64,000 nucleotides of DNA. Source: Euprymna scolopes (taxonomy: Eukaryota). A program made the translations under genes and the position numbers. The stretch lies in the NCBI GenBank assembly GCA_053919585.1, contig CM132803.1; one strand, 5' to 3'. This document shows positions 2,925-64,000 of this stretch, piece after piece. How positions within the stretch are numbered: position 1 is the stretch's first letter; each line of letters starts with the position of its first letter. The notes beneath the pieces are model-generated. The model made no database searches and had not been told where the DNA came from. It was given only the letters and a program-made list of their open reading frames with translations.

Positions 2925-3906
2925 CTTTTCCTAATATATGATACATAAAGCATGATAAAGATTGTTTACATTTCATATTTATAAAATATAAACTTGTCAA
3001 GTAATACCTATCAAATAAATCTTGTTCATTATTTAAATATAGTTAAATGAAAACATACTAAATTTAGTAAAAGATATTCCTGCTATAAAATATAATAGTT
3101 TTGAGTATTAGACTTTCAAATAAGCCTTGAGTTGAAAAATTAAAAAAATAAATAAAAAACTCATACAATTTGATTGTTTGCAGTAATGCCAAAGAATCCT
3201 AATGGATTCTTATCTTGCTTCTATTTACACTTCAATAAAATCTAAATAATCTATGTATTATTTATAATATCAGAAAACATCTCATGTGTATGTGGTTTTT
3301 TTTTTGTTGATACATAAGATTACATGATTATGTATTATTTATTATGTTATTTTTTATTTATTATTAATCAAATATTACAATTAAAAATAAAATAAGGAAA
3401 ACTGAAACAAATTTAATAAAATTCTGTTAAAAACAAGATTGTAGTGAATAAATAGTTTTTGCTAAATCTTCAGCCTGACAATGTATTACCATCTGGAGAA
3501 TATCAAGTAAATAGAGCTAGTAAATTTATTTAAAAAAAATCACATTATTATAAAAAATAAAACTGATAAAAGAAAATACTAATACATATATAATAGGGCA
3601 GTCCATAAAGATATTCTTCAATGGATAAATAAAATAATGAACACAACTTTAAAATAAGAGATCATACTTAGCTTGAAATTAAGTGTTGTATTCAAATAAC
3701 ATTTTCTCCAAGTAATAATTTATGCCTAAAGGTAAATTTAATTTTCATGATATGATAAAATTATTTTAATTTCCTGTCATTTTTATCATATAATACTTAA
3801 AACTAGAAGCGAGCAGCAATTTTAAAACAAATATTTGACACTTTAGTATTTAAAAAGATAAAGGAATGAAAAAAGCAAATGTGGATAAGTAGCTAGGAGT
3901 TTAAAT

Positions 3907-4255
3907 GCATCATGAGAGTCAAAATAGTATTTTTCTACTTTTAATATTTTCAAGAAGGATATGAATAACTGTGTGTTAATCTTTAAACCATTTATAATAG
4001 TAGTCATATATAAATAAAAAATTGATTTAGATATACTAAAACATATTCTCTGTATGAAACAAAACAATCATCAAATACTGTAACAGCCATTGCATACGCA
4101 ACATATTAATTAGGACTACTGCTTCATTTCTCTCACCAACATCCATTTGTAATAAATAGCTTCCAAACAATAAAAAAACACAAAAAACAGTTGCAATACA
4201 ATATACCAGATATAGTTTGCATCTTCATAAATCTGCAGTGAATTGTACAATAAAG
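3907..4255 (+). promoter_or_regulatory. Degenerate promoter module and non-coding exon 1 of pseudogene psiA
   Basis: GCATCATGAGA (3907-3917; others GCATTTTGGGA), TGTAACAGCCATT-N20-AGGA at 4079, donor AAG|GTAAG at 4255/4256. Confidence 0.65.
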
Positions 4256-4484
4256 GTAAGATTATTTGATAATTTTCTTTTCATTTATGACACATGTAGA
4301 AATTAAATGATGGAGATTCATGTAAAAAAATAGAAGACATTATTAATCAATTCATTTTTATTTTTGTATGAAAACGAATTGTACATTCTTTTATTACTAT
4401 TTATTTTCAAGTATAAAACTATAGTTTTAAATTATCAATAGCATAATTAAGTACAGATTTCTTAAATACTACAGCTTTAATTTG

Positions 4485-4847
4485 TGAGGGTCATTCCAAA
4501 AGTAAAGCCTCCTATTTTTTAATTCAAAAAGTTGAAAAGCTACAAAACTGGAAGTGGTGTCATTAAAACGAGTAATCTTTTGTACTCTATAATTTATTTT
4601 TCTACATCACCACCACTATTCTCAATGCATGTCTGCCAGGAATTCAATAGCACATTTCTACTTCTGATGCACGCACACACAGGGGTTGCTTTCTTAGAGC
4701 CTCACACTGTCAATATCTGCAACAGAGATGAAGTTTTAAGTCATGAATACATAAGTTCAATCATCATAACAATGCAATTTGCAATCCTCTCTGATTCATT
4801 CAGGCAGAATAAAAAAATAGGATGCATTACTTTTGGAACACCCCTCA
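4485..4847 (-). mobile_element. Internally deleted Tc1/mariner-type element
   Basis: Imperfect TIRs TGAGGGTCATTCCAAAAGTAAAGCCTCCTATTTTT / AAAAATAGGATGCATTACTTTTGGAACACCCCTCA followed by TA; minus strand reads WQTCIENSGD-VEK*, resembling a mariner transposase C-terminus. Confidence 0.75.
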
Positions 4848-7652
4848 TAATTTCTGTTATGGAATGTGATTGTAGGTTTAATTTTTTATTTTTTAGAATG
4901 CAGTAAAACATACATTTGCTAAATTCAAAATACATGGTATTTGTATTAAAAAAGCAACAACCTGGAAATTAATAATCTCCAATTAAATTTTTAGTTTTTA
5001 GCTTTTACTTAAACATAATGCGAACATTTTAAACAAAATGGCTGCCTCACAAGAACTATTCGCATAACGCTTAAGATATTAACATAACCGAGAACAGTAA
5101 AATGTTTTTAAGAATTTCTTGCACAGTTACTGACAGCATTGAAATCTTTAAAGTTATTTTAAATATCAGCTCTCTTTAAAAAGTAAAAATAATATTAAAA
5201 GTCTAAATGTAAAAGAAAACTATCATTTTAGAATAACTATCTTAAGAACTGATTGTTTGTTATGTTTCTTTGAGTGCTTGCCTTTTGAACAATCTTCTCA
5301 ATTCAATTATTAAAAAAAATTATGTACAGAAATTTACACAATACAACATCAGATAAAATTCTATTAAGTATTTTATCTAGTTGTTAAAAGAAAAAATTCC
5401 CTGTAATAACTTTTCAAGTTATTTCTGAATTAATCTTAAAATGTTTTATGCTATTTTAATTTGATCAGGCAACTTGTTCCAAATATATATTACTCTGTTA
5501 GTAAAAAAAGATTAATTGTTTAATAAATTTAGTTTTTGAAATTTGTTTGAACAGTAATCTTCCAGATAAATAAGAAAAAAAAGTTACCACTATAGTTAAA
5601 AATGTCATCAGAGTTTGAAATGTTATGTATTTGAAAGTTGAAATTAAATTAATTTTCAATCTTCTGCACTTTTTGTCGGAATCCTTTGAACTGGTGAGAT
5701 AACAGTATTCAAAGCAGTGCTAACACTTATTTATATATATTAAATTGCTTTTCTATCCTCTCTGGAATAACTGTCTGTTCATGCCTACATGTCTATAGCT
5801 TAATCTAGTTGCTTATTTTTTAACAATCTTTCAGGCATATAGTTTGATTCTAATTAATTTATAAAAGTATGCCTGATTTGCTGTTGGAAGTCTGAATCAG
5901 TATTTTAGATTTCTAATCCCTCATTTGGTGATGGGCAGGTGGCAGCTAATGCAGGACGAGCAAAAATTGTTTTTTCTTTACATAAAAATTCAGTCCAGAA
6001 TGTCCATGGTACTTTCATAAGTTCCATAATGAAAAATTTTATAAATTGATATTGTAATGTGATGTACTAACAAGTTTATTCGTTTTAGTATTAGATGAAT
6101 TGTTCTACAATATTTCCAGACATTAGTAGAATTTGAGTCTGTAGAGTTCAAGTGCAGTCATTTGATTTCAAACATTTATCCATAATTATATATATTTAAT
6201 AAATTGTAATTAGAAATGTGTTTAGCTTAATAAGGCTTAATTGAACACAATAATGTTTGTGACCATAATTCTAAACATTATAATGTATTTATTTTATATT
6301 TAAGAAAGATGAGAGGGGAGGTAATTGGTTGTTTTAATATCTTTCTGACTTCAATATTATATTCCAATTTACATGTCTAGATGTTGATGACCATGCCAGA
6401 GTACAATACTTTATTTTAGTACCTTAGTGTTTTACATATTTTTAAAACAACATTTGGTTCACTTAAAATATTTCAAACCATCCATCTAATCATTCCATTT
6501 TTCTGTAATATAACTGTATAAATGCAGTTTTTATTAAAAGTAAATAATGTTTAATTTTTTTTTTTTATTGATATACTAGCATGACCTGTGTCTCTGCATT
6601 GCCTGGGAAAAAGTGTAAGCCCCCAAAATAAAATTGCAAATTAGTTGACCTTATGACAAAAGTCACATCATACACCTAAGAAATAAGATCCCAAAAAACT
6701 GTTAATGTCTTTTTTACCACGAGCAATGTCACAACTTTACTTTATGTGTACACATTAATATAATTTTTCTAAATATGATCCAAAAAATTTTGGTGAAGAA
6801 GGGAGGGATAGCTTAAATAAAAGAAATAATACCAAAGGTTCTGTGTTGCGGTGGGAGTAGAGATACAGTTTTAATTAATTTAGTAATTAGATAATTTTTT
6901 AAATAGTTTTTTAAAAGCTTTTGTGGGAATAGGGAGAGGCCTGATAAAAAAATGCTGGTACTAAATAGCTCCTAAAACTTTCCATATTTTAATATATGCA
7001 TGTTTTGCTAAAAATTTTAAAGCCAGTAAGAAAGTTTTCTATTACATAATTTAAATGTTTTCAATTTCCTTTAAAGTTTCTTTTAAAATTATTAACAAAA
7101 GAAGAATATTTAAATGACTAATATTTTGAGCCTGAGTGATGATGTGTGTTAGTAGGGAGTGGAGGGGATGCCTTTGTTTATAATTTTCATTTTATAAGGA
7201 TATCAGACCAGCAACCACAAGGTTGCTAAAATTATTTGTAGAGCACAAATTCTAGAAAATAAACCAGTATCTGTAAATAGAAGTATTTGTTATATTATAA
7301 TCAAAACAAATGCTGAATAGAAATATAATAAAAACAATAGTTAATTAGTGAAATTTTCTTTTACAAATAAGTTAATATTACAATATGGATGGCATATGCT
7401 TTAGCAGTATGTCAGAAAGGTTCGTTTCTGCAATGTAAAAATTAAAATAATGTTTCAAGTTCACTGTTAGCAAGAGCTATCACAACTTTATATGTACAGA
7501 TTAGAGTAAATCTTTAAAAAAAAATTTTTTTTATTTTTTTATTATTTCATACTTGAAATCTATTTTTTGACTTACTGTTTTTTTGTTTGATATTTAAAAA
7601 AATGCATTGTGGAGATATGAAAATTTGATAAACCATATCTTGAATAGCAAAC

Positions 7653-10010
7653 ATGTTTTTACAAACAAATATCACTATCTCTATTTAATACATATGTGAA
7701 GCTACAGATTTGACGTTTAAAATACATGAATGGATAAGTCCTGGCACTTACCTTGAAGACATTGCTGCCGATTCTAATGTGATGGATGATGTGGCCATAT
7801 AGGATCAAAATCTCATTGCAATCAGTCTTATGGAACAGGATGAAACAAGCAGCTTTCAATTATTCTGCGTTTCTAAAAATACAGGAAACTTTTATAGAGC
7901 AAAAACATTGGATGCTGAATCTTTATGCATATTTGAAAAAAGAATGTTTTCTGATGGTAAATATTGCTGTTCAAAGAGTACATACAATAAGCAGAATATT
8001 AAAAATCAAAGTAATAATTGAAAATGTAAATCAACCAGAATTTCCAAATAAGCAAGTTAATATTGAATTTTCAGAAGACGATGGCAAAGGGATAAAACGT
8101 ATGATCTCAAATGCAGTAGATAAGAATATTGAATACATTAATTTTCAGATTATCTAGAAATTAAAAAAATATAAAGATGAAACATTTGGTTTAACTAAAA
8201 TGTAGATCGAACAGCTGATCTGTATATTATCTTAAAAAAAGATTGAACAGAGAAGTGAAAGAAAGCTACATGGTAAAAGTCATTGCTAAAGATGGTGGAC
8301 CCCCTTCCCTATTTTCACGTGTGACTGAAAACCCAAATATCTATGCATTATATTGCCAATCTTATCAAAACCCTTGATTCCAGAAAAGCAACTGATCCTG
8401 ATGGCATTCCAGTCACAGTACTCAAAAACCAAACTAACTCTCATACTTACAAATCTTTTTAAATGTTGTCTTACGGAGAAATGCTTACCAACACCTTGGA
8501 AAACTTCATCAGTAAGATGTATTGAAAAATTCTCGAGATCGATCATCTGCCCCTCACCCCAGTACAGACCAATCAGTATCCTGTACGTCATGAGTAAGTT
8601 GCTGGACTCTGTGATAAATAGAGAAGTGGTCAACCTCCTCAGCAAAAATAACCTATTCGGTGACATGCAATATGGTTCATGTTTTGCTAGATGTATAGCT
8701 GATGTGCCAGCTGTAATATCACACAAGATTAGTGAATCTCTTGACAGGGGCTTTGTTTCTAGAGCAATTGCTCTTGACATATCAAAGCCTTTTGATAATA
8801 TATAGCATAATAGTCTACTTCACAAGATTTTCAGCTGTGGAATAGCTGAAAAGTCCTCCCAATTATTAAATCCTTTCTCTCTCATAGGTTTATCATCCTG
8901 GGTCCAACTCTTTGTGATCTTCATCAATGAACTTCCAAATCACATTCTTAGACAACACTACCATCTATGGCAACACTTCAAAGGTCAACAATATCATCCA
9001 GAATAACCAAGATCTCTTTGATTCTCTCTGTACTGATCTTGAGCATGTGATGCAATAGAGAAAAGGTGGTTGATTAATTTTAATGTATCTAAAACCAAGC
9101 TTCTCTCTTTCCATCATAAATGTTCTGACCCCCCATCTAACCAACTGAAATGAATGGCTCCCATCTTGGGGAAGCACCATATTTTGACAAGCTTGTTGAA
9201 CTTATGTTCACTTCTGATCTGAAATGGAACACATGCATCAAATCTGTTGCCAAGATTGTCGGAAAAATGGTTGGATTATTCTACTGCTCTAGTAGATATC
9301 TCACTGCTGATGCAATCCTCTAACTGTATAAGAGCAAGGTATATTCTAGGATGCGAGCCTGTCTTTGTTCTATCATTATTTTCATGACAAGTACTTATCT
9401 GAGCTTCAAATTTTCACAAAAAACACTTGTCTAGCTACAACCACTATCAACAATTTCCACCACTTTATTTGTGCCTAAATCTAAACACAAATTCTATGAA
9501 CAAAGCTTCTTACCTAGAACTATCCATCTGTTCTGCTGGACTGCTTTGCGGCTGACTACAATATGATCACCTTCATATCCAATATAAAAAAGTTCTTGTT
9601 GAGCCATCCACTTAAATAATCAAATTATACCCAATTTCCAACACTATCTATTACTATGCTGTCCTGGTTATTACTGTATACTCATTAACCCTGATTAGTG
9701 ACCTTCGGACATTGACCAAACCTTGTTAAAAAAAAAATAAAAAATAAAAAAAAAATAAATAAATAAAAATAAACAAGTATTTTAGATGTTCACATTTCAG
9801 TTGCAGATGTGAATGATAATCCTCCTGTCTTCTCACAAAATTTTTATAATGTCACAATCAAAAATGAACCAAGTGAAACTTCTTCTATTGCAACTTTATC
9901 TGCCACAGATTTAGTTTATATACTGAAGCTAGAGATGAGGGTAGTTCTCCTTTGAATTCTCTTGCTATGATTTTGGTAAACTTCAGAAGTGCTCATATAA
10001 ACTAAACCAG
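7653..10010 (+). pseudogene. Protocadherin pseudogene psiA (EC1-EC2, LINE insertion, EC3 remnants, fragment of tail)
   Basis: Frameshifted and stop-containing homology to paralogs; EC2 (NIEFSEDDGKGIKRMISNAVDK) closest to P3; interrupted at 8308-9769; large deletions after ~9915 and ~9981. Confidence 0.9.
8308..9769 (+). mobile_element. 5'-truncated, decayed non-LTR retrotransposon (CR1/Jockey-group LINE, RT region to A-rich tail)
   Basis: YRPISIL, QYG, ALDISKPFD and GP-LF-IFINELP RT motifs; A-rich tail 9728-9769; Pcdh sequence resumes exactly (CCTTC|TAAACAA). Confidence 0.88.
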
Positions 10011-10114
10011 GTAAATTTTAAAATAAAAATGAGGAGATAAAATATAAGTTTTCAATACTTTAATGAAAGCTAAAAATTCAAATTTACTTAAATTTATTTA
10101 TTTTTTTATTTCAG

Positions 10115-13100
10115 TTACGATAAAATTGAATTCATCAGATTCTTTCCAGAAGCAATCATACATAAAAATGATAGTATTAACATTTTTGATATTTCTACAC
10201 ATTTGTCATGGTGTGGATTTATCATTTGAATTGAAGAAGGTAAAAGTTCTGGCACTTACCTTGGAGACATTGCTGCTGGTTCTAATGTGATGGATGATGT
10301 GGCCATACAAGATCAAAATCTCATTGCATTCAGTCTTATGGAACAGGATGGAACAAGCAGCTCTCCATTATTCCGGATTTCTAAAAATACAGGAAAACTT
10401 TATACAGCACAAACATTGGATGCGGAATCATTGTGTACATTTAACAAGGAATGTTTTGTGATGGTTGATGTTTAAAATAAAATGAACACTGGACAGATTT
10501 TTTTAGAAAAGAAATTTACATTGAGTAATGCATTAACACATAACTTGTAGGTGTTCGATGTGGAAACAAAAGATATGTATGAAGGTGCAACAAGATGTTG
10601 GTTCCTATGAGGTAGTGTTGGTTATCAAGGATAGTGGTAGCCCAGTTCTATCAGCAACAACTAGTATGTTTTTCATTATGACTGTAAGCAACAGAACATC
10701 AGAAATGCTAAGTGCCGTTCATACAATCACTGAAGATAAAGTTGATCTTACATCAATCATTATTATTACGGTTGTAGCAGTGACTGTAGCAGTGACTATT
10801 ATTGCTTCAATTTTGGTATCTATTATTCGATGTAATGATCAGAACAATGTCACATATGCCCATGCAATGGAACCAACCAATGTGGGTGTTGTTGGTCCAA
10901 GTGGAAGGCATATGAGTGCTCAGAGCTATTTGATGTGTCCTTCAAAGCCAACTACTATCAATGTAAACAAAAACCAAGCATATAAAATCAGGTGCTCATA
11001 TAAACCAAATCAGCAAGCAATCCCACATGGCAGAAAACCTTCCCAATCAACAACACAGATCGGCTTCCTTGATACAAACACAAATGTCTACTGAAGCAGA
11101 TCTACAGGTTTGTTTCTATTTATATTTCTTGCTGTAAAATTTTAATAATTTTTTTGTAAATCCCTTTTTAGCTAGGATCAAAACTAATCGACAAACTCAC
11201 CCACCTCGATATGGCTAGAGAAACTGGTTGTGAAAGTATATAGTGCAAAGCTTTGACCATTGTTTTAAACCATACTTTTGTAAATGCATTTCCTTTCTGT
11301 ATTGTTTAGTGATGGCAGTGTTACAAGTAAATATGATAAAAATACCTAAAAAAAAAGGTGGATAAAAGTAGCAAGTTTGTGTGTATGAAAAGGAACAAGT
11401 ACTAGAATGTGCTCCTACCTGAGCACGGTGCACATAGTTTCTGGTCCTCTCAAACCCTAGTCCTTCGGGTAAGTTTAACTTCTTAGCTAGATGGATAAAT
11501 GAATCCCCCATCCTTCCTGGTATTAGAGGTCGAGATCCTCCAAGGCGCCCATTCACAAATTCATCTTGGAAGGACACCATCCACTCTCCCAAACCACATT
11601 CCTATTTCTTTTTTTCTCACTTAGAGATTGTGCTTTCAGTTCTGAACAAATCAGAAAACCATGGGGAGTCTATTATTTAGAAAGGGTTGGAAGATGGGGG
11701 TTGCGAATTATTTGTTTTTGTTTTCCTATTTCCCATTTTATCCCAATAAGTTTGTGTTTATAAATATCTTTATGAAAAATGAAATTTAAAAAAATTTGAA
11801 GATGCCTAAAGTAAGATGGTCCCTAGAATAAATATAATATTGGGGTGATTGAGATCATTCCAGTTCAGAGTTGGATAGACAATTTTATCACTTTTAGCCC
11901 AAGAATGACCAACGACTAATTTCCCCTATACTTTTTATGACGCTGTGCCTAATTTGTTACATTGTATATTTTTTACTTGATAACAAATAAATAATCCAAA
12001 GTATTTGTCCTGATACAACACTCCATCTTTTCTTCTAAACGACTACAATTTTTTTACTATTTTCCCAATCCAGAGTCTTTTTAAGGAGCTAGATTTTCTC
12101 TACATTAAAAATCAACCTTATATATAACTCTGACCTCATGAAAAGGCAAGCAAATAGGAACCCCAAAGAAACATTTCATATTATTTAATAATTTTCAATA
12201 ATGTTTTGTATAATTACTAGTTAATTTGATCTAATTTTATTTGATTAATCTATATTTTTACTGTATATAATAATTATTTTATATTATTTTTTGAATTTAA
12301 AATACTCAAATTCCTCAATATCATTTGTTATTTTATCGTGACTAGCATGAAGTTAAATCATTAACTGAAAGCATCCAAAGTAAATCAGCAATTTACAACA
12401 AACCATCCCCAAAGATGACAAGAAAGGAAACTTCACAAAATAGAAGTCGGACTAATATACAATGTGATTAAGGAACAGGTAAGAAGAAGTTTTTGTTTTT
12501 AATTTTTTACAAATACAAATTTTAATTCATAACAAATGTATATATCAAACTTTTGTCACATTTTCATTATAAAAATAACATAATTTTTATGACTTCAAAA
12601 ATGTTTTTATCATTAGCTAAATCATTTTATCTATATTATTAATTCAATTTCATTTCCTATCAAGCAAAAAGCATTTAACATTGTATTTCCATCATAAAGT
12701 TTCTGTTTTTTTTCTGAATGAAACAAATTATATTTAATTCATTTTTGTTTCAATATGATTTAATATTTATTTTATTGCATTTTCTAACTAAAATTTAATT
12801 ATATAAAGCAATAAAATGAAATCAAAATGCAAATGAATTTTTTAATGATTTCTAAGTTTATCTCTAAATATTTTTAACGTTTTTTAAATTTATTTCTAAA
12901 TATTTTTAATGTTTTCTAAGTATATTTCCAAATATTCATAATATATATTTTTTTTATTATTAGTATGCTCTTTTGCTTTTGTATTTCAAGAGATGTTTAC
13001 TTCCCAGTACTGCAATTTTCCAAAACAAAGACGGCTGCCAGCACAAAAGACAGAGATGAAGCCAATGGGACAGACTGTCAACTTCCCAAGTGATACAACC

Positions 13101-13253
13101 ATTATGGCCAGGGGATTCTATACACCAAATATTTCACAAAACAATAACAACAAAGAGTCTGTGACAGAAGATAATAACGTTTGTTATACAAGTCTCTTGT
13201 CAACAGGAAATATTTATAGAAATCCAAGACCTTTACCCCCAGTACCTCACTAA
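10115..13253 (+). pseudogene. Protocadherin pseudogene psiB: deleted large exon 10115-11107, exon-3 remnant ~12346-12478, exon 4 ~12991-13253
   Basis: Acceptor and leader nearly identical to P2, first ATG changed to ACG, frameshift in EC1, EC2, EC4 and EC5 deleted, donor CAG|GTTTG at 11107; exon-3 remnant has a stop; exon 4 still open. Confidence 0.88.
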
Positions 13254-14169
13254 AAAAATTTTTTTATCACTATTTGGACAAAATGCATTATTACTACTAC
13301 ATATAATTTCATAAAAAAAGAAATAGAGTCCCATAACAACAAAACATTTCACACATATAATTGAATCATATAAATTAAAATGTTGAATAATGAAATTATA
13401 CTTTAGTATTTTATAACAATAACAATTAAAATTATTAGACAATAACTTGTACACTTTTATAAAATATTGAGTACACTTATTGCTTTATTGATTCTGGTCT
13501 ATACTAAAATGGATGACTATTTGAGAATGTCAGGTGCTGTATGTGCTTTCCACTTATGTCAGCACTGTTTCCAGTCATCCTGGATTTCTCCTTGCCACTG
13601 GAGTTAAGCAGTGCTGATTCAGGAGAGTATGGTTAGAGATTACACAACCCTTGCTTCACAATTACATGTGCAGGCACCTTTACAGACGGTATCCATCACC
13701 TCTCAAGACTGAACCCTTATTATTATGATGATCATCATCATTATTATAGTATCTATTTCAAAATATACATTCAAATAAAAGATTTTAATTCAATTTTCAA
13801 CAATTTCTAAAAATTTACATTTTTAGACTGAAAATTATTTGTAAATTTGAAATCCATTTTCATTGAAAAACAAATCTAATAAAACACTGTCAATGAAATT
13901 CTCCAATGAATTTAAACTAAGACAATTGCACTGTAATATATATAAGCTGATAATTATTTAAAACAAGAACAAAACATACTCACATATTTACAAGTTTATT
14001 TTATCCACAGATTTTCAAGCTGTAATTGGTATAAATTGTTGTACATTTTTTTATATGCATCTTGACACAAAGACCTATTCCTACACAGTCGTTGAGATAA
14101 AGGCTTTTCAAATATAGATAGAGAGAAAGTAGCAAATGATTTAGTATGAATAACCAAACATACTGAAAT

Positions 14170-14534
14170 GCATTTTGGGAAATCAATTAATTTTTTTTTT
14201 CTTTTTCATGGTTATTCTAAAAACATCCTTATATATATTAAGATATCACAAAAATGTTGATTTCATAAAAAAAAAAAAAAAAAAAATCATATATCTTGTA
14301 ACCTCAGTCCAGGTTTTGCATAAAGCATAGCAGTCATCACATAGTGTAGCAGCCATTACACACTCAACATATTCACTAGGATTGCTGGTCCCTTTTTTTT
14401 CATCAATTAAAGAAAGCAAGCCACCAACCGACTCTTAAATAATAAAAACAAAATAGAAAACAGCAGCTGCAGAAATTACAATAAGGATGTAGTTTTCAGT
14501 TGGGTTGAAACTACAGGATATTTAAAAGAAGAAG
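14170..14534 (+). promoter_or_regulatory. P2 promoter module and non-coding exon 1
   Basis: GCATTTTGGGA 14170-14180; TGTAGCAGCCATT 14345-14357 then N20-AGGA; donor AAG|GTGAGT 14534/14535. Confidence 0.78.
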
Positions 14535-25359: not shown

Positions 25360-25712
25360 GAACAAAGAACTGTGTGAAAAAAAGAGCATCTTGGGAGTTT
25401 GAAATTAATTTTTTAAAAACAAAATTTTATTCAAATCTTCATATATATTTTATACTGGATACATGAAAATTTCGAATTATTTCATTAAAAACAAAATAAA
25501 AACAAATAAAACCGAATGCAATTATATTCCTGCTGAACAGTAGTCACCACTTATTGTAGCAGCCATTGCACACAAAACACACACAACAGGATAATTGTCT
25601 TTTGTGTTCATATGGAGGACTCAACCCTGTATGGAATTTCCAAAGAGCAGCTGTGAAAATTATAATGAAAATTTAATTTTTATTTCTGAAGACAAATTTT
25701 CATAAAATAAAG
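25360..25712 (+). promoter_or_regulatory. P3 promoter module and non-coding exon 1
   Basis: GAACAAAG 25360, GCATCTTGGGA 25386, TGTAGCAGCCATT 25555-25567, donor AAG|GTAAGT 25712/25713. Confidence 0.78.
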
Positions 25713-33650: not shown

Positions 33651-34008
33651 GAACAAAGGGCTAAATTCAGACATTGCATTTTGGGAGTTAAACATTTTTG
33701 TTTTGTTTTAAGATTATTTTTATGTTTTATATATACATATTTATATATTTCAAAATACAATGATATTTATTCATATTCCTTTAAAAAAATAAAACAAAAT
33801 CAATCTAATTTTTTCATGATGAATAATAGCCATTATGGAATGTAGCAGCCATTAGAAACACAACACACTCATTAGGACTGCTGTATTACATCTTACAACA
33901 GAAACATTTTTATGAATATGATTTTGGCAAATGTACACTTGCAGAATTGTTAATAAGGATGTAATTTTCCATCTTTCTTCATAATCCTCAAATTTTTCTG
34001 AAAAGAAG
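33651..34008 (+). promoter_or_regulatory. P4 promoter module and non-coding exon 1
   Basis: GAACAAAGG 33651, GCATTTTGGGAG 33676, TGTAGCAGCCATT 33841-33853, donor AAG|GTAAGA 34008/34009. Confidence 0.8.
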
Positions 34009-35875
34009 GTAAGACAATAAACCATATTTGCGTTCTTTTTGTCTAAATGATTGACGACATAAAAGATGAGATTTCATGTTTTGTTGTGCATTTCAATTGA
34101 CAAGCAACTTATTTTATTTTTTTGCATTTTGCATTGATTCTCATGAGTGTAAACTAAGCTAGTATAAGTTTTTGTTGATTAAAAAAGTATGTATAAAAAT
34201 AAAAAACATGTAAATACAAATATTTAATTAAAATAATTGTATTAATTGGTAAGTATATGAAGAGAGAATGGTAGCACACACATATATACAATATATTTAA
34301 ATGTTTACATTGTTGTTTTGCTGCGAAAAGATATTTATTTAAATCATGATTTTCTATCAAAATAATTAAGTTAATGGCTTAATGAGATTTATGATGAAAT
34401 ATGATTGCATTTGTACAACGATCAACAATATTTTGTTATTATAAATATAAATATCTGAAAAGATATTATAACATACAATTTAGTTATAGTACTAAATTAA
34501 GAGCAATTTTTCTTTCTATTAAAATGTTGGTTTCTCCTATGCCATTTACTTTTGTTGATAAATTATATGCATGAATTAGATGAAACATCTGATTTTTTTC
34601 TACATTTATTTTCTTAAAAATCATGAATTAAGAAAAAAATTATCTATTTCCATTAATAAGCATGTTTGGATGATCTAGAAACTGAAGTTCTTTGGAAATT
34701 ATGATAAAATATTATGATTAACTATTTTAAATGAACTACTGGTTGTATATGTTTGTGGTAAGAATCAGTGTTTTTCAGTGTCTGATTTGATGAACAGATT
34801 TAGTTGGTTGGAAATTTTATTGAAAACTATATTTCATTGTCACATGAAGAAAGCATAATCATACACTTCTTTTTTTATAATACTGATACAAATTATTTGA
34901 AACTGTTAAATATAAGAACATTGTTCTCTTAATGATTACTTTAAAAAAGACATTCCTGACTATTTTTTTATATATAATATTGGATGAATAAACCATTGTT
35001 ATATACAATTGAAATTGTAATTAATTTTTTCCATATTTTTTTAGTAATTTAATTATAACACTAAGATCTACTGTTATCAATGTCTTCATTCTGACAATGA
35101 AATATGAATATATCTAAATCGAAATTTTATCTTTTTAAGAAATTTTTACTGACTAAATCATTATCAAAATAATTTACTTCTGTTCAATTTACTGTTAACA
35201 TTTACAATGTTCATTTACTCAAAAATATTCCATAACATGATTCATTTTAAACAACAATAGGATTTCATAGAATTAATTCATTATAGTGGTAAATGATTTT
35301 CATAGAAGTTGTCAGTAGATTTAGTTTTTTCTTAATTGATAATTATTATTTTGAACATCTGTTAAGTTTTACAGTAATTTTCATGAATAATATTGTTGTT
35401 TTTTTTTTTTCAATCTATTTGCTTCCTAAATCAGTAACAATATTTTTCATGAATAATCATATATATGAAAATATTTTATGGCAATGAAGATTCTTTTTAA
35501 TGTTTCAGTATTATTTGCATTTAAAATATTAAAAAAGTTACTATTTTAAGAATTAAACATTAAAAAAATACTTTTCATTGTACATCAACTTTAAAACGAT
35601 TTTTCAGTTAACAGTGTAAGTTTTGTTCAAATGGTAGCAGCCTTTTAGATTCATCAATAATTAAATAATATAGAGCTAAGTTTACCAAAATGTTTTTCTA
35701 GTTTTTATTTTAGATTTAAAAGGTAGTGTCTCACAAAATAAAAGTAAATATTTTAAAGGTTTTCCTAATAAATTTGTTGCCACATTTAAAATGTTAGTTA
35801 ATGAATAATCTCAATGTCTTTATATTTCAGGACAGTAAAATCATCTTGGATATTCAAAAACAATAAAAGTAAAAA

Positions 35876-41610: not shown

Positions 41611-41742
41611 NNNNNNNNNNNNNNNNNNNNNNNNNNNNNNNNNNNNNNNNNNNNNNNNNNNNNNNNNNNNNNNNNNNNNNNNNNNNNNNNNNNNNNNNNN
41701 NNNNNNNNNNNNNNNNNNNNNNNNNNNNNNNNNNNNNNNNNN
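41611..41742. other. Assembly gap (N run)
   Basis: N characters. Confidence 1.
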
Positions 41743-42191: not shown

Positions 42192-42555
42192 GAACAAAGG
42201 AGTGAATAATCCGAATTGCATTTTGGGAGTTACATATGATTTTTTTTTAAATATAGTTTTTATTTAAGAAATGATTTTTATCTCTCATTTAAAAGTATTA
42301 TATTAACTTTTGAATCAATTTTCTAAAAAAAAATATAAAATAATGAGATATAGATTTAATTTCTCTATGATGAGTAGTAGACATTATCAATTGTAGCAGC
42401 CATTAAGCACTCACCACATTCAATAGGACTTCTATCATCTTTCTTAGCTTAATCAAAAAAACTGGACACTTTTACTTTGAATAATATTCTCAGAAAACAG
42501 CTGCAGAAACCAAAATGAAAATGTAACTGAAAATGATACAATTTTACTAACAAAG
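42192..42555 (+). promoter_or_regulatory. P5 promoter module and non-coding exon 1
   Basis: GAACAAAGG 42192, GCATTTTGGGAG 42218, TGTAGCAGCCATT 42392-42404, donor AAG|GTAAGT 42555/42556. Confidence 0.8.
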
Positions 42556-47976: not shown

Positions 47977-49144
47977 GTAAGTAATAAAATGATGCTTTTC
48001 TCTCTGTTTTTTAATTGATTTTTATTTTTCCTGTTTCATAAACTTTCAGCATTTAATTTTTTGATTTTATTATTAATTGAATTAAGAAATGCAATAGTGT
48101 AAACTGAAACACACCTTTTAAAAATCTTATTTGAAATAATAATTTAATTTCCAAAAAACGTTTGCTTCTCATCTATATATCGATATTTTTTCATACCTGA
48201 TATTTAAAAAAAAAACATTTTGATTTTTGTTTTGACAGTTCACACTATACAAATTAGAACTTTCTTGAAATTTTACAAGACTTTATTTTCACACCACATT
48301 AATAAAACATATGTACCATCCGTATAATTTTTTTTTTTTTTTAAATTAAATGAAGGCGGAGAAGATTCTTGTCAACCAATTTGTAAATTTTCTTTTCTCT
48401 TTTTAGACATATCATAAAATGATTTTACAATGTTCAGGGCTGAACTATGAATATGTTTTTAAACTTTTACATTCACATTAATCTGGTACTATTAAATCCC
48501 ATTTGATGAAGAAGCTGGTATTTTTAAATGTTAGTCTTTGTGTTCAAGAAAACATTCTTGAAATAAGGACATGTTTCTATATGGGAATGTTATTAAGTTC
48601 TGAGCAAAGTATTGCATAATGAATGAAGTATTTTTGAAAAATAAAAAGATTTTAAATGATTACAGTTTGAATACTTAGAAAATTGTTTAAAAATAAAATA
48701 TATTACGGTGTGATATATCGGATGATATTAAAAATATTACTCAAATTTGATCATGGTCTATGAATATTTTGTTCACAAAAATCAGTTTTTAATGAAATAT
48801 CCTGAAAAATCAATACTTACTTGTGAAAATAAAGATACACATCACTAAATTTGTACAAATTATTTATATTCCTTAAGTACTTCATAAGTTCCAACATGGG
48901 AACATTGGTAGTTTTTTAAATGTGAAATCTTTTTATTTGTCACTCTTTAAATTTAAACATAATTTCTTTTAAAAGTTAATACATGGTAGCATAATTCAGA
49001 TATAAAAAGATTAATTCATAGGATTTTTAATTTGTTATATCAATTTTTGCAATAAAAAAGTTTTAATACGTATATTTAACTTCTAAAATAATTTTTATTT
49101 TATAATTTGTGATGATATTACTGTTGATTGCATCTATTTTTCAG

Positions 49145-49410
49145 AAGTTTATACTTCCCAGTATTGTAATTCTCCATCAAAAGAAAGAAGGTTGCCAGCA
49201 CAAGACACAGAGATGAGGCCATTGGGACAGACTGTCAACTATCCAAGTGATACAACCATTGTGGCCAGGGGATTTTATACACCAACTCTTTCACAAAACA
49301 ATGACATTAAAGATTCTGTGACAGAGGACAGTAATTCTTCTGATATAAGTCAGCAGTCAGTGGGAAATCTTTATAGAAACCCAAGACCTTTACCCCCAGT
49401 ACCACAGTAA
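49145..49410 (+). CDS. P5 terminal exon 4
   Basis: ttcAG acceptor in phase 1; VYTSQYCN...LYRNPRPLPPVPQ*. Confidence 0.9.
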
Positions 49411-49909
49411 TTGCTGCAGTTTATACATTATACTTCAATAATTATTTAATTCTTTTAAAGTGTTATTTAACATGAAGAAAAATTAATTTATTTGCAATTT
49501 TTTTTTCAAATATTAAAAATATACTTTTCTCAAAAATTAAATCAAAAGAATAGGATTAAATAAAATATCATTTTTAGAAAAAAATGTCATATTTTATACA
49601 TCAAATGATTATCTTAAATACAACAACTTACATTTTTTTCATAAAACGATTTTCGTTTCTTAAAAACAAAGAATAGTTATAAAAGTGACAGGCATTTAAA
49701 ATGAATAGCTGCATTAATCTTATGGTATTGACAAAAATTCCCAAAACAGACCCAAGTATGATTTTTCTGTCAGCTGAAGATGTATTTTGTATACTGTTGA
49801 TAATTGCACAGACTATTTTATACTTACATTAATTACAGATGAAGATGCTTTTATGCTATAGAGAGCCACCATGTTTTAGAGAAGGAGAAAGAAGAAAGCA
49901 GGCAGCAAG

Positions 49910-50282
49910 GAACAAAGGATTGAATTGACACAATGCATTTTGGGAATTAAAAATGAATTTCATTTATTTTTAAAATTTATAATTAAATACACATTTATTT
50001 CCAAATATTTATGCATTTAGGAGAATTTTATGAAAAAAAAAAAGAATAATTAAAATTAATTATGTTGGCTTTGTTTTCTTTATGATGAATAGTAGTTGTC
50101 GTTTATAGTAGCAGCCATTGTACATACATCACATTCACTAGGATTCCTACTTACTGTCTCAACTAAACATAAAGGATGGATCCCTGACTGAATGATTTTC
50201 TTTTAAACAATTGCTGCATAAGATATAGTAACAGCATCAATTCCATTGTATTTTAATTAGACAATCATTCTTTGCTACAAAG
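49910..50282 (+). promoter_or_regulatory. P6 promoter module and non-coding exon 1
   Basis: GAACAAAGG 49910, GCATTTTGGGA 49935, GTAGCAGCCATT 50108-50119, donor AAG|GTAAGT 50282/50283. Confidence 0.8.
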
Positions 50283-50504
50283 GTAAGTACATTTAATCAT
50301 TCTGTTTTTTGTTTGGATGTCAACGACATATAGGAAAATGCATTCTAGTCTATACTTCCCAGTACTGTAATTTTCCATCTTGCTAAACATTTGATATAAG
50401 AAAATTTTGATTTAAAGAGTGTGAATTTATAAATTTATAAACTGCATATTTTAATATTATTTTCTTTATACTTCTAAATATTTGTAGACAGTTTGTTATT
50501 AATA

Positions 50505-50677
50505 GTGAAGTTCAACATAAACAAATTCCTGATGAACCACCACACTTTATCAAATCTCCAATACTAACAATTACTACAATACTATCCCATTGATTACTGT
50601 ACACACATTAACCCTTATTCCGAGTGGCTTCTGGGCCTTGATAAGTGGTGATCACCATGTAAAAAAAAAAAAAAAAA
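50505..50677 (+). mobile_element. Short 3'-end LINE fragment with poly(A), related to the 3' end of the 8308-9769 element
   Basis: TTACTGTACACACATTAACCCT resembles TTACTGTATACTCATTAACCCT at ~9671; ends in a long A run. Confidence 0.6.
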
Positions 50678-51096
50678 GAACTGTTAGATAAACAAACATG
50701 ATGGAAAATACATTTCTAATATATCGATTTTTTTAATATGGTTTATGCTTTGAAGCAATATTAAATATAATTTAATTCTAGATATAATGTAAAATTCACA
50801 TAAAATTTCATTTATAATTGTAAGAAAAATGTTTAGCCTTCTAATAGAAGTCAGAAATTGTATTTTATAAATAATATTTTAAACATTGCTTTAAGATGTA
50901 AATTGATAAAAAACATTTTAAAATATATATATGAAAAATATTGTTTAAAAAAGATTGAATTCTGATCAAATTTGAATAAGAATTTAATAAGAATTCAAAT
51001 TTTATGGAAATTTACAGCTTATAACAAAATTTGTTTTAAATTTCAGGGTCGAACTGCCACATATCTTAAAAAGGAATCTGATTTCACTACAAAAAT

Positions 51097-53535
51097 ATGT
51101 TGATTCAAATATGGATTCTGCTCTCATTCCTACACATTTGTAATAGTGTAGATTTGACATTCAAAGTTGAAGAAGGTAAAAGTCCTGGCACTTACCTTGG
51201 AGACATTGCTGCCGATTCTAATGTGATGGATGATGTGGCCATACAAGATCAAAATCTCATTTCATTCAGTCTTATGGAACAAGATGGAACAAGCAGCTCT
51301 CCATTATTCCGGATTTCTAAAAATACAGGAAAACTTTATACAGCACAAACATTGGATGCTGAATCTCTGTGTACTTATGGAAAAGAATGTTTCTTAATGG
51401 TTGATGTTGCAGTTCAGAAATCTAAAAGGATTATGAAAATTTTAGAAATCAAAATAATAATTGAGGATGTAAATGATCATCAACCAGAATTTCCTGATAA
51501 ACAAGTGACCGTTCTGTTTGAAGAAAATTATAAAAAAGGAACACAAGTTTTAATTCCAAATGCTATTGACAAAGATATTGGAGATATCAATTCACAAATA
51601 ACTTATGATCTTAAAAAATATAAAGATGAACCATTCGGGTTATCTGTTTCAAAAAATGTTGATGGCACATCAGACTTATATATGATACAAAAGGAGAGCT
51701 TAGACAGAGAAGTGAAAGAAAGCTACATGGTAAAAGTCATTGCTAAAGATGGTGGATCTCCTTCTAAACAAAGTATTTTAGATGTTCACATTTCAGTTGC
51801 AGATGTGAATGATAATCCTCCTGTCTTCTCACAAAATCTTTATAATGTCACAATCAAAAATGAACCAAGTGAAACTTCTTCTATTGCAACTTTATCTGCC
51901 ACAGATTTAGATTCTGGTAAAAATGGAAGAGTCACTTATCATTTCAGTACAAAAACATCTGATGTTGCTAAAAGTCATTTTAAATTAAATCAACAAACTG
52001 GACAGATTTTCTTAGAAAAGAAATTTACATTGAGTAACATGCTGACTTATAACTTATTTGTGGAGGCTACTGATGGTGGCAATCCTCCCTTAACAGCTAA
52101 ATCAATGATCATTGTAAATGTTGTTAATAATCAAAATAATCCACCAACAATTCATCTAAAATTTTTGGCAGCATCTGGAAAAGATTCAACATCTGTTTCT
52201 GAAAACATTGAGGTGGGAAGTTCCATTGCATATGTAAAAGTGACTGATCATGATGTTGGACAAAATGGAGAAGTGAGTTGCAATCTGCATTATGATAAAT
52301 TTAAACTACAAAGTCTCGACACTAAGAAATACCAAGTAATTGTGAAAAAAGCATTGGATAGAGAAAGAGAGGCAAAGCATGAAATTATTATCAGCTGTCA
52401 AGATAAAGGATCTCCTCCACTGCAAAGTAAGAGTAAGTTCTCCATCAAAGTCACCGATGTGAATGATGTAAGGCCACAGTTCTCTATGGAGACATTTAAG
52501 TTCTTGATTGAAGAGAATGAGAAGTCAAGATTTTCTGTTGGCTTCATCAATGCAACAGACCCAGACCTGGGAGTTGGAGGGAAACTCACCTATTCTCTGC
52601 TCACAAATAACAAACAGTTTTTACCTTTCAAAATCAAAGATGATGGCATGATTTCAGCCATTATGTCACTGGATCATGAGTTTCAAAACATTTACAAGTT
52701 TCAAGTATTTGTGAAAGATAATGGAATCCCATCTCTCAATAATACAGTCAACGTCATTGTTGAAGTGACTGATAAAAATGATAATGCTCCGTATTTTACA
52801 TTTCCCAGTGTCAATCCTTATAACATGGATGTTGTATATTACCGGCATCATTCAAAGAACATCACTTGTGTAAAGGCAGCTGATGGAGATAGTCAAGAGA
52901 ATGCATTTCTAAAATATGAAATAATCAGAGGCAATGACAAGCAGATGTTCGCCATCAACCAGTACACTGGTTTGTTAACTTTCAATCGCGTGCTTGCGCA
53001 ACAAGATGCTGGTTCCTATGAGCTAGTGTTTGTTGTCAAGGATAGTGGTAGCCCAGTTCTATCAGCAACAACTAGTATGTTTTTCACTGTCACTGTAAGC
53101 AACAAGACATCAGAAATGCTAAGTGCCGTTCATACAATCACTGAAGATAAAGTTGATCTTACATCAGTCATTATTATTACGGTTGTAGCAGTGACTGTAG
53201 CAGTCATCATTACTGCTTCAATCTCGGTATGTATCATTCGCTGTAATGACCAGAGAAATGTCACATATGCTCATGCAATGGCACCAGCCAATGTGGGTGT
53301 TGTTGGTCCAAGTGGCAGATATATGAGTGATCAGAGACATTTGATGTGTCCTTCAAAGCAAGGAATATCTTGGCCAACTGCTGTCAATGTAAACCAAAGT
53401 CAAACAGATAAAATAAGAAATGCACATATCAACCAAACCAGCAGAGAATCCAATCCCACAGAAAAGCTTCCCAGTCAGCAACAAAGATCAGCTTCTCTGC
53501 CACAGGCTAAAACCCAATTACAAGCTGAATCTAAA
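51097..53535 (+). CDS. Protocadherin P6 large exon
   Basis: Acceptor at 51046; 6 EC plus TM; donor AAA|GTAAGT at 53535. Confidence 0.95.
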
Positions 53536-53870
53536 GTAAGTAATATATTTTTCCTATATATACATCTTTTATGTGTGATATCTTGATTGATAGAATAGTT
53601 TAAAAACTTATTTTATTATTTTGTTGTATAAATTCAAATATTTTAGAACTCTCTTTTTATAGAGATATACATTTTACTTGGGTAATGTTTTATTGAAGTA
53701 TTACAGATATAATTTTATTTTAATGTTTGTATTTCTTTATTATATTATCAATAGACTTCTTTATTAAATTATCCTTCCTGAATTTTTCCTCAATAAGTAT
53801 TTAATTTTGGTTATTTCATAGTTGCAATCCATAACAAATTTTCAATATAATTTTTTTTTCTATTCAACAG

Positions 53871-56552: not shown

Positions 56553-56932
56553 GGACAAAGAACTGAACTAACAGAATGCATTTTGGGAATAAAAAAATTA
56601 TTTTAATATTTTTAATTTTAAATATTACCATAGGTTTTATTTTTTAGTTTGCAAATATTCGAAAGAGTCTTTTTAAAAAAATTAGATAATTCTAATCTAA
56701 TCCAATGAAATTTCATACCTCATTGATGAATAGTAGTCATCTCCCACTGTAGCAGCCATTGTTCACACAACACACTCATTAGGATTACTTCTTTCGACAT
56801 CACATCAACATGAGGAGGAACATGAGAATCTTTACCTGGATGTAATTCATAAGAAATAAATTTCTGCAAATGTATCAGAGAATAAAATGTGGATTTAATT
56901 CATTTGAAATACAGAAATACCAATAAAAAAAG
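56553..56932 (+). promoter_or_regulatory. P7 promoter module and non-coding exon 1
   Basis: GGACAAAG 56553, GCATTTTGGGA 56578, TGTAGCAGCCATT 56748-56760, donor AAG|GTAAGA 56932/56933. Confidence 0.8.
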
Positions 56933-63475: not shown

Positions 63476-64000
63476 NNNNNNNNNNNNNNNNNNNNNNNNN
63501 NNNNNNNNNNNNNNNNNNNNNNNNNNNNNNNNNNNNNNNNNNNNNNNNNNNNNNNNNNNNNNNNNNNNNNNNNNNNNNNNNNNNNNNNNNNNNNNNNNNN
63601 NNNNNNNNNNTATATATATATGTATGCATATAAACATGTATATATATATGTATGCATATAAACATGTATATATATATNNNNNNNNNNNNNNNNNNNNNNN
63701 NNNNNNNNNNNNNNNNNNNNNNNNNNNNNNNNNNNNNNNNNNNNNNNNNNNNNNNNNNNNNNNNNNNNNNNNNNNNNNNNNNNNNNNNNNNNNNNNNNNN
63801 NNNNNNNNNNNNNNNNNNNNNNNNNNNNNNNNNNNNNNNNNNNNNNNNNNNNNNNNNNNNNNNNNNNNNNNNNNNNNNNNNNNNNNNNNNNNNNNNNNNN
63901 NNNNNNNNNNNNNNNNNNNNNNNNNGTATGCATATAAACATATATATATATATGTATGCATATAAACATATATATATGTATGCATATAAACACATATATA
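63476..64000. repeat. AT-rich minisatellite (TATGTATGCATATAAACA(T/G)..TATA units) interleaved with assembly gaps
   Basis: Repeated units between N runs. Confidence 0.8.

Follow-up and report, generated by a model that had tools for sequence, protein, structure and literature searches.

In vertebrate protocadherin clusters, a conserved sequence element (CSE) with a CGCT core is bound by CTCF and stands before each variable exon, and the variable exons are spliced to shared constant exons. Vertebrate small nuclear RNA (snRNA) and type 3 promoters have a proximal sequence element (PSE) at about −55, with a positioned nucleosome between their elements. The same vertebrate snRNA and type 3 RNA polymerase III genes carry a Staf-binding site (SBS) and an octamer at −199 to −245 (PMC3627581). 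The SBS spans 18 bp; conservation is highest at CCCR (positions 3–6) and at C12, and the remainder is degenerate (PMC3082894). A CCCA-to-AAAC mutation abolishes binding (PMC1904299). Here, we describe a 12-bp element, the distal box, one copy of which lies ahead of each of six intact ~835-aa protocadherin genes in a 64-kb stretch of Euprymna scolopes DNA (contig CM132803.1 of assembly GCA_053919585.1; hereafter, the window). The box is under selection and resembles the Staf/ZNF143 site in its core.

The snRNA and type 3 layout is the closest known to that of the array, which likewise has a Staf-type site about one nucleosome from a conserved proximal element, with unconstrained sequence between them and confined spacing. 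However, the array lacks an octamer, a PSE-like element at −55, a 3′ box, and a conserved small-RNA product, and its boxes, unlike those of snRNA genes, are followed by a spliced 5′ untranslated region (UTR) exon of a protein-coding gene. Compared with the vertebrate SBS1-type site (18 bp, TTCCCAGAATGCATTGCG-like), the array boxes keep CCCA at positions 3–6 and ATGC at positions 9–12 and score 12–16 of 17 consensus positions, six published human sites scoring 13–17 on the same consensus. They differ in the 3′ YYRCR/GCG part, which is not conserved in the array, and neither contain a CpG nor lie in a CpG island. In addition, the host is an invertebrate, and the putative targets are neuronal adhesion genes rather than housekeeping or small-RNA genes. 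With the vertebrate CSE the array shares one stereotyped conserved promoter element ahead of every tandem member, which by analogy suggests a common control mechanism over many alternative promoters. The elements themselves are unrelated in sequence: the array has no CGCT or CTCF-type consensus, and TGCATTTTGGGA and GTAGCAGCCATT are its only conserved islands of this kind. Moreover, each unit of a cephalopod array is a complete gene that has a terminal exon to itself (PMC9068888), and the vertebrate and cephalopod arrays arose independently.

In coleoid cephalopods, protocadherins have expanded, independently of vertebrates, to hundreds of whole-gene copies. Full-text literature searches found no analysis of cephalopod protocadherin promoters and no published description of the box; one report describes the cephalopod arrays without using the word "promoter" (PMC9068888), and another mentions promoters only where it deals with promoter choice in vertebrates or in DSCAM (PMC6339937). 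A promoter grammar that is short, under selection, and common to the whole array offers a handle on how cephalopod neurons regulate, and perhaps choose among, their protocadherin genes, and it names a testable candidate factor together with defined mutations. If the ZNF143-type reading is true, Staf-type promoter control would extend to a lophotrochozoan and to a neuron-specific gene family.

Distal Box Copies in the Protocadherin Array

The array comprises six intact open reading frames of 829–839 aa, all on the plus strand and spaced ~7–10 kb apart. Seven units (U0–U6) and seven terminal exons are present in the window, whose base composition is 72% A+T. Each unit begins with a distal box, followed by an A/T-rich spacer of ~160 bp, a proximal block ending in GTAGCAGCCATT, and a non-coding exon of ~160–180 nt; an intron of 0.8–2.3 kb, a coding exon of ~2.5 kb, another intron, and the unit's own terminal exon complete it.

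A first-pass annotation of this DNA had listed six copies of GCAT(T/C)TTGGGA, and exactly six exact matches to GCATYTTGGGA were recovered (at 14170, 25386, 33676, 42218, 49935, and 56578), all on the plus strand, with 0.03 expected from shuffles. A mismatch-tolerant search adds a seventh pair of boxes, TGCATCATGAGA at 3906 and GTAACAGCCATT at 4080, 174 bp apart. This pair belongs to U0 (3906–13246), a protocadherin pseudogene whose coding exon is reduced to fragments in three frames (7653–11046). The U5 box lies between the 3′ end of the gene 4 terminal exon and the putative non-coding first exon of gene 5. On the minus strand it reads TTCCCAAAATGCA and then TTGTG; the 49935 copy is the one with TTGTG past the box. 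The copies are as follows, with matches to the 17 informative positions of the Staf/ZNF143 consensus.

49934–49945, minus strand: distal box of U5 (TGCATTTTGGGA), the element under study; 16/17 positions
14169–14180, minus strand: distal box of U1; 16/17 positions
25385–25396, minus strand: distal box of U2, variant AGCATCTTGGGA; 12/17 positions, one position breaking the core pattern
33675–33686, minus strand: distal box of U3; 14/17 positions
42217–42228, minus strand: distal box of U4; 15/17 positions
56577–56588, minus strand: distal box of U6; 15/17 positions
3906–3917, minus strand: decayed distal box of the pseudogene unit U0 (TGCATCATGAGA), CCC core broken; 13/17 positions

Selection on the Distal Box

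The seven units were aligned over the interval that begins at the preceding terminal exon and reaches 150 bp into the coding exon, and we scored as conserved those 10-column windows in which at least 5.5/6 letters were identical among the six intact units. Outside the coding sequence, only three blocks pass this threshold: the distal box, a low-complexity A-run in the spacer, and the proximal GTAGCAGCCATT block. These islands are surrounded by 1.7–3.3 kb of non-coding DNA per unit. Pairwise identity is 0.66 in the spacer (0.63 ± 0.03 for shuffled sequence) and 0.64 in the 150 bp upstream of the distal module (0.63 for shuffled sequence); since both are at the shuffled level, neutral DNA between the paralogues is saturated. 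The 12-bp island is invariant in five copies and matches at 10/12 positions in the sixth. Such near-invariance within saturated surroundings requires purifying selection and is not accounted for by recent duplication.

The pseudogene provides a natural control. U0 is the only unit whose box has three consensus changes, one of which breaks the GGG/CCC core, and it is also the only pseudogene, as judged from a coding exon shattered into fragments in three frames. The decay of its box agrees with selection on the box. The first-pass claim that the box is selected is therefore borne out, the box being one of just three conserved islands in saturated non-coding DNA, and we consider it very likely that it is a selected cis-regulatory promoter element.

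Proximal Box, Spacer, and Spacing

Another of the islands is the proximal box. The sequence TGTAGCAGCC has five exact matches in the window, the copy after 49935 reading AGTAGCAGCC; the proximal core GTAGCAGCCATT is exact in 6/6 intact units. An additional GTAGCAGCC-like match at 35634 has neither an upstream box nor conserved context and was set aside as a chance occurrence.

50108–50119, plus strand: proximal box GTAGCAGCCATT of U5, containing an initiator (Inr)-like CCATT
4080 (1 mismatch), 14346, 25556, 33842, 42393, and 56749, plus strand: proximal boxes of the other units, equivalent to GTAGCAGCCATT of U5
49946–50107, no strand: A/T-rich spacer of U5 (length, 162 bp; A+T content, 84%), in which a run of 11 A lies at about −84; sequence unconserved between units

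The distance from the distal box to (T/A)GTAGCAGCC, which the first-pass annotation had put at 165–175 bp, is 175, 169, 165, 174, 172, and 170 bp in the six intact units. Measured from the distal 12-mer to GTAGCAGCCATT, it is 167–177 bp (span, 10 bp; standard deviation [SD], ~3.4). By comparison, other non-coding intervals vary by hundreds of base pairs: the stop codon lies 466–995 bp before the box, and the proximal box lies 989–2442 bp before the ATG, an interval most of which is intron 1. The spacing between the boxes is thus confined, as had been proposed. At ordinary indel rates, and with substitutions saturated, a 160-bp A/T-rich stretch is expected to spread by tens of base pairs (an order-of-magnitude estimate), so the length of the spacer is probably constrained. 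The box-to-box distances are spread over all helical phases; this absence of helical phasing argues against a rigid face-of-helix contact.

The spacer had been described as poly(dA:dT)-rich and unconserved. Most of it is indeed unalignable between units, but its A+T content is raised only modestly (78–85%, versus 75% ± 6.5% in non-coding 160-bp windows, or ~1 SD richer), and an A-run and the last ~35 bp are conserved. The A-run, of 6–20 nt on the plus strand, lies at about −68 to −88 from the proximal GCCATT (e.g., 50033–50043) in 6/7 units; the U2 spacer contains no A-run of 6 nt or more. This positional A-run could be a nucleosome-excluding tract. A T-run directly past the distal box was also seen in three units (U1, U2, and U4).

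The final ~35 bp of the spacer form a conserved core-promoter block, with a TGATGAATAGTAG-like stretch at −35 to −22 of the GCCATT initiator (50082–50095 and equivalents). A conserved ACACAACACATTCA.TAGGA follows at +6 to +27, and sequence beyond +45 is unconserved between units. The non-coding exon closes at a conserved AAG/GTAAGT-type splice donor, found 157–184 bp past the proximal box in 6/7 units. A snRNA-type gene between the boxes was rejected on these grounds (unconserved sequence beyond +45, followed by a conserved splice donor) and because no Rfam family is present in the window.

Likeness to the Staf/ZNF143 Site

On the minus strand the box reads (T/C)TCCCAAAATGCA, which fits the core of the Staf/ZNF143 consensus. 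Every 18-mer of the window on both strands (~127,000 positions) was scored against the 17 informative IUPAC consensus positions, a count of matches rather than a JASPAR weight matrix. The four top-scoring 18-mers are four of the boxes (16, 16, 15, and 15 of 17); the U3 box scores 14, the U2 box 12, and the U0 copy 13. The core pattern YWCCCRNMATSCM has five matches in the window, with 0.15 expected, and all five are distal boxes on the minus strand. CCCA occupies positions 3–6 in 6/6 intact boxes (CTCA in the pseudogene copy), and ATGC, matching the A-T-S-C block of the site, occupies positions 9–12 in 6/6, which puts C12 at the correct distance from CCCR. The consensus quoted in the first-pass annotation reportedly agrees with the outcome of Staf binding-site selection, and it is consistent with the site as described in the literature (PMC3082894). 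Its claim that the reverse complement of the box fits this consensus holds for the core and for the ranking of 18-mers but fails for the 3′ half, where YYRCR is not conserved. The boxes have no ACTACA extension and are therefore SBS1-like (PMC3627581).

Judged by its sequence, then, the box is a real, selected upstream promoter element that may be called ZNF143-like in that respect only. That the factor reading it is a ZNF143/Staf orthologue is a tentative proposal, to which we assign somewhat less than even odds; full-text literature searches found no report of ZNF143 in cephalopods.

The HMG-Type Site

The first-pass annotation had noted ACAAAG ~25 bp before the box in five copies. This was confirmed, the hexamer being fixed at −22/−23 in U2–U6.

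49912–49917, plus strand: ACAAAG, a Sox/TCF-type high mobility group (HMG) core, in U5, 22 bp before the box
25362, 33653, 42194, and 56555, plus strand: equivalent ACAAAG sites in U2, U3, U4, and U6, respectively

Compared with the Sox/TCF HMG-box site (WWCAAWG), the array has AACAAAG or GACAAAG 22–23 bp from the box in these five units. No ACAAAG precedes the box in U0 or in U1. The composite HMG plus ZNF143 site proposed in the first-pass annotation is consequently not obligatory, as the intact gene of U1 does without it. In the whole window ACAAAG occurs 62 times on the plus strand and 12 times on the minus strand, a bias probably due to purine richness in the coding and 5′ regions of genes that all share one orientation. 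Because the hexamer is so common in A/T-rich DNA, only its fixed position is informative.

Start Site and Transcripts

In run X2, a transcript contig starts exactly at 50117, at an Inr-like CCA+1TT (the A of GCCATT). The same run shows no coverage over 49686–50116, and a contig over the 3′ UTR of the upstream gene ends at 49685. We infer that the start site is this A (50117), which would place the distal box at −165 to −186. The conserved block at −35 to −22 and the conserved donor 157–184 nt downstream also speak for this start. Of the sampled words of 49790–50282, a fraction of 0.22–0.24 is present in each of three runs, which come from separate studies and include one true oligo-dT RNA library; exon 1 makes up ~0.29 of that stretch.

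Contigs of study P1 span 49724–50883, covering the promoter, exon 1, and intron at a depth that is uniformly low and no higher over exon 1; their upstream limit is ~210 bp before the distal box. The source of this coverage could be unspliced RNA, RNA initiated further upstream, or DNA carried over into the library. In raw-read runs of organism B, the promoter was hardly covered at all, and most of the output came from an intronic repeat (50413–50726).

Transcripts from other cephalopods were also compared. An ACACAC...TAGGA stretch in the 5′ UTR of one of them (L003, positions 70–105) is similar to the exon-1 motif. The remaining contigs of the set L001–L010 could not be aligned, and none of the ten comes from this sub-array. 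A search with the N-terminal 200 aa for 5′-UTR-bearing contigs of the sub-array yielded no near-identical Logan fragment, and scans of metagenomes with the two-box pattern and with the protein gave no matches.

Proposed Mechanism and Alternatives

The explanation that we favor, with a probability of roughly 45% for the whole of it, is that the distal box would serve as the upstream cis-regulatory element of a private promoter carried by each protocadherin gene in the array. The box would sit in untranscribed DNA, between the 3′ end of the upstream gene and the non-coding first exon. Its candidate reader is a sequence-specific zinc-finger activator of Staf/ZNF143-type specificity, recognizing (T/C)TCCCAAAATGCA on the minus strand, which in most units would be assisted by the Sox/TCF-type HMG site located 22–23 bp further upstream. 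Once bound, these factors would hold the A/T-rich interval open and would stimulate initiation at the Inr-type core promoter. The distal module would span ~60 bp and include, besides the box, a stretch rich in purines and an HMG-type site that is fixed in position yet dispensable. In this scheme we infer where transcription starts, which factor binds, and that the box activates. As for chromatin, the first-pass annotation had joined "one nucleosome's distance" to "nucleosome-depleted"; these are two different models, the interval being wrapped around one nucleosome in the first and free of nucleosomes in the second.

Several observations weigh against such a Staf-type activator mechanism. The vertebrate 3′ part of the site, YYRCR at positions 14–18, is unconserved between copies, individual copies matching at 2–4 of the 5 positions, and the usual GCG is absent. 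The gene of U2 is intact, yet its box deviates at two positions. Neuron-restricted genes would be odd targets for ZNF143, which is a ubiquitous activator of the housekeeping kind, and vertebrate SBSs in mRNA promoters usually lie nearer the start site. As to the start site itself, contigs of four P1 runs (whose library kind is a guess) cross the whole promoter from 49724, L003 extends ~70 nt upstream of the homologous exon-1 motif, and no spliced exon 1-exon 2 joint was recovered among the transcript contigs and reads over the promoter.

In one alternative, a selected promoter element would be bound by a different factor (a lineage-specific C2H2 protein, Su(H)/RBPJ, an Ikaros/EBF-type reader of TGGGA, or a POU protein on TGCAT), its likeness to the ZNF143 site being coincidental or convergent. 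Conservation is limited to 12–13 positions and does not extend to the vertebrate 3′ half; within the window, the motif is found at protocadherin promoters only. RBPJ, for which TTCCCAA has also been given as a motif, can bind SBS1 in vitro (PMC3627581). Cephalopod C2H2 genes are massively expanded and lie on the same chromosome as the protocadherin arrays (PMC9068888). We regard this alternative as rather unlikely: RBPJ-type readers leave unexplained both the invariant ATGCA half and the tolerance of TGGGAG in three copies, and no other consensus considered covers the whole 12-mer, whereas the Staf core does so with the right internal spacing. RBPJ/Su(H), an Ikaros/EBF half-site, the POU octamer, STAT, and THAP11 (which needs ACTACA) were each tried and rejected, as they cover the 12-mer partially or are contradicted by the three TGGGAG copies; the consensus sequences of these factors were taken in part from PMC3627581. 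A separate and improbable proposal makes the box the far edge of a bidirectional nucleosome-free promoter, as part of a core promoter for antisense transcription ~175 bp upstream of the sense start. The motif is on the minus strand in all copies, a pyrimidine-rich run lies directly beyond it on that strand, in human cells SBS elements by themselves suffice for bidirectional transcription (PMC3082894), and contigs of P1 runs, which carry no strand information, cover 49724–50215. That coverage, however, is continuous over both boxes, with no gap between divergent starts; it does not appear in run X2, and no strand-resolved reads cover the region.

The remaining alternatives deny the box a promoter role. 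Since every box is located 466–995 bp past the terminal exon of the preceding gene, it might belong to that gene as a downstream element of 3′-end formation or termination, past the terminal exon and poly(A) site. This is very unlikely, because the distance to the upstream stop codon varies two-fold, compared with 10 bp for the distance to the downstream proximal box, and because the decayed box pairs with the downstream pseudogene, the surviving coding exon and terminal exon of the gene upstream of it looking intact. Least probable of all is a functionless box, left over from recent duplication or patchy gene conversion. In its favor, the coding exons are 88–94% identical at the protein level, but the spacer and the sequence directly next to the box are no more similar between units than shuffled sequence is, a conversion tract would give a contiguous similar stretch and not a 12-bp island, and decay is seen solely in the pseudogene unit.

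A broader and frankly speculative scenario has, we think, only a slim chance of being correct. Cephalopods may have independently evolved a cluster-wide two-box promoter for their protocadherin "barcode" genes, in which an Inr-type core and a zinc-finger site are held roughly one nucleosome apart. The reader of this site would be either the ZNF143 orthologue or a C2H2 protein specific to the lineage, from the family that expanded alongside the protocadherins on their chromosome, and the site would serve as a handle for isoform choice by each neuron, convergent with the CSE/CTCF system of vertebrates.

Other Features of the Array

The predicted proteins of the six intact genes contain a signal peptide, at least five cadherin repeats, and a Cadherin_2 N-terminal domain. 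Their closest named relatives are protocadherins of the cuttlefish Acanthosepion pharaonis (~60% identity); proteins from the ENA assembly are closer (83%–89% identity). The exons that flank the U5 promoter are listed below.

49144–49409, plus strand: terminal coding exon of the upstream gene 4, ending ...RPLPPVPQ and stop, 526 bp before the U5 box
50117–50282, plus strand: putative first exon of gene 5, non-coding, running from the A in GCCATT, where the X2 contig starts, to the donor AAG/GTAAGT
51047–53586, plus strand: large coding exon of protocadherin gene 5 (acceptor 51046/51047, ATG at 51097), encoding the signal peptide and cadherin repeats

At the end of each terminal exon, ...RPLPPVP is separated from the stop codon by a single variable residue, which was Q or H in the units that were read. 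The terminal exon of U0 (ending at 13246) appears intact, unlike the U0 coding exon. Runs of N occupy 41611–41742, 63476–63610, and 63678–63925 (515 letters in all), and the first of these starts 44 bp past the terminal exon of the gene preceding U4.

The repeat at 50413–50726, in intron 1 of gene 5, is a highly repeated element, probably a short interspersed nuclear element (SINE) of high abundance. Its summed contig word depth in RNA runs is 10^4–10^5, and raw reads that match it in part number in the hundreds. Several A>G and T>C differences were observed within it, which repeat-copy variation or A-to-I editing could explain.
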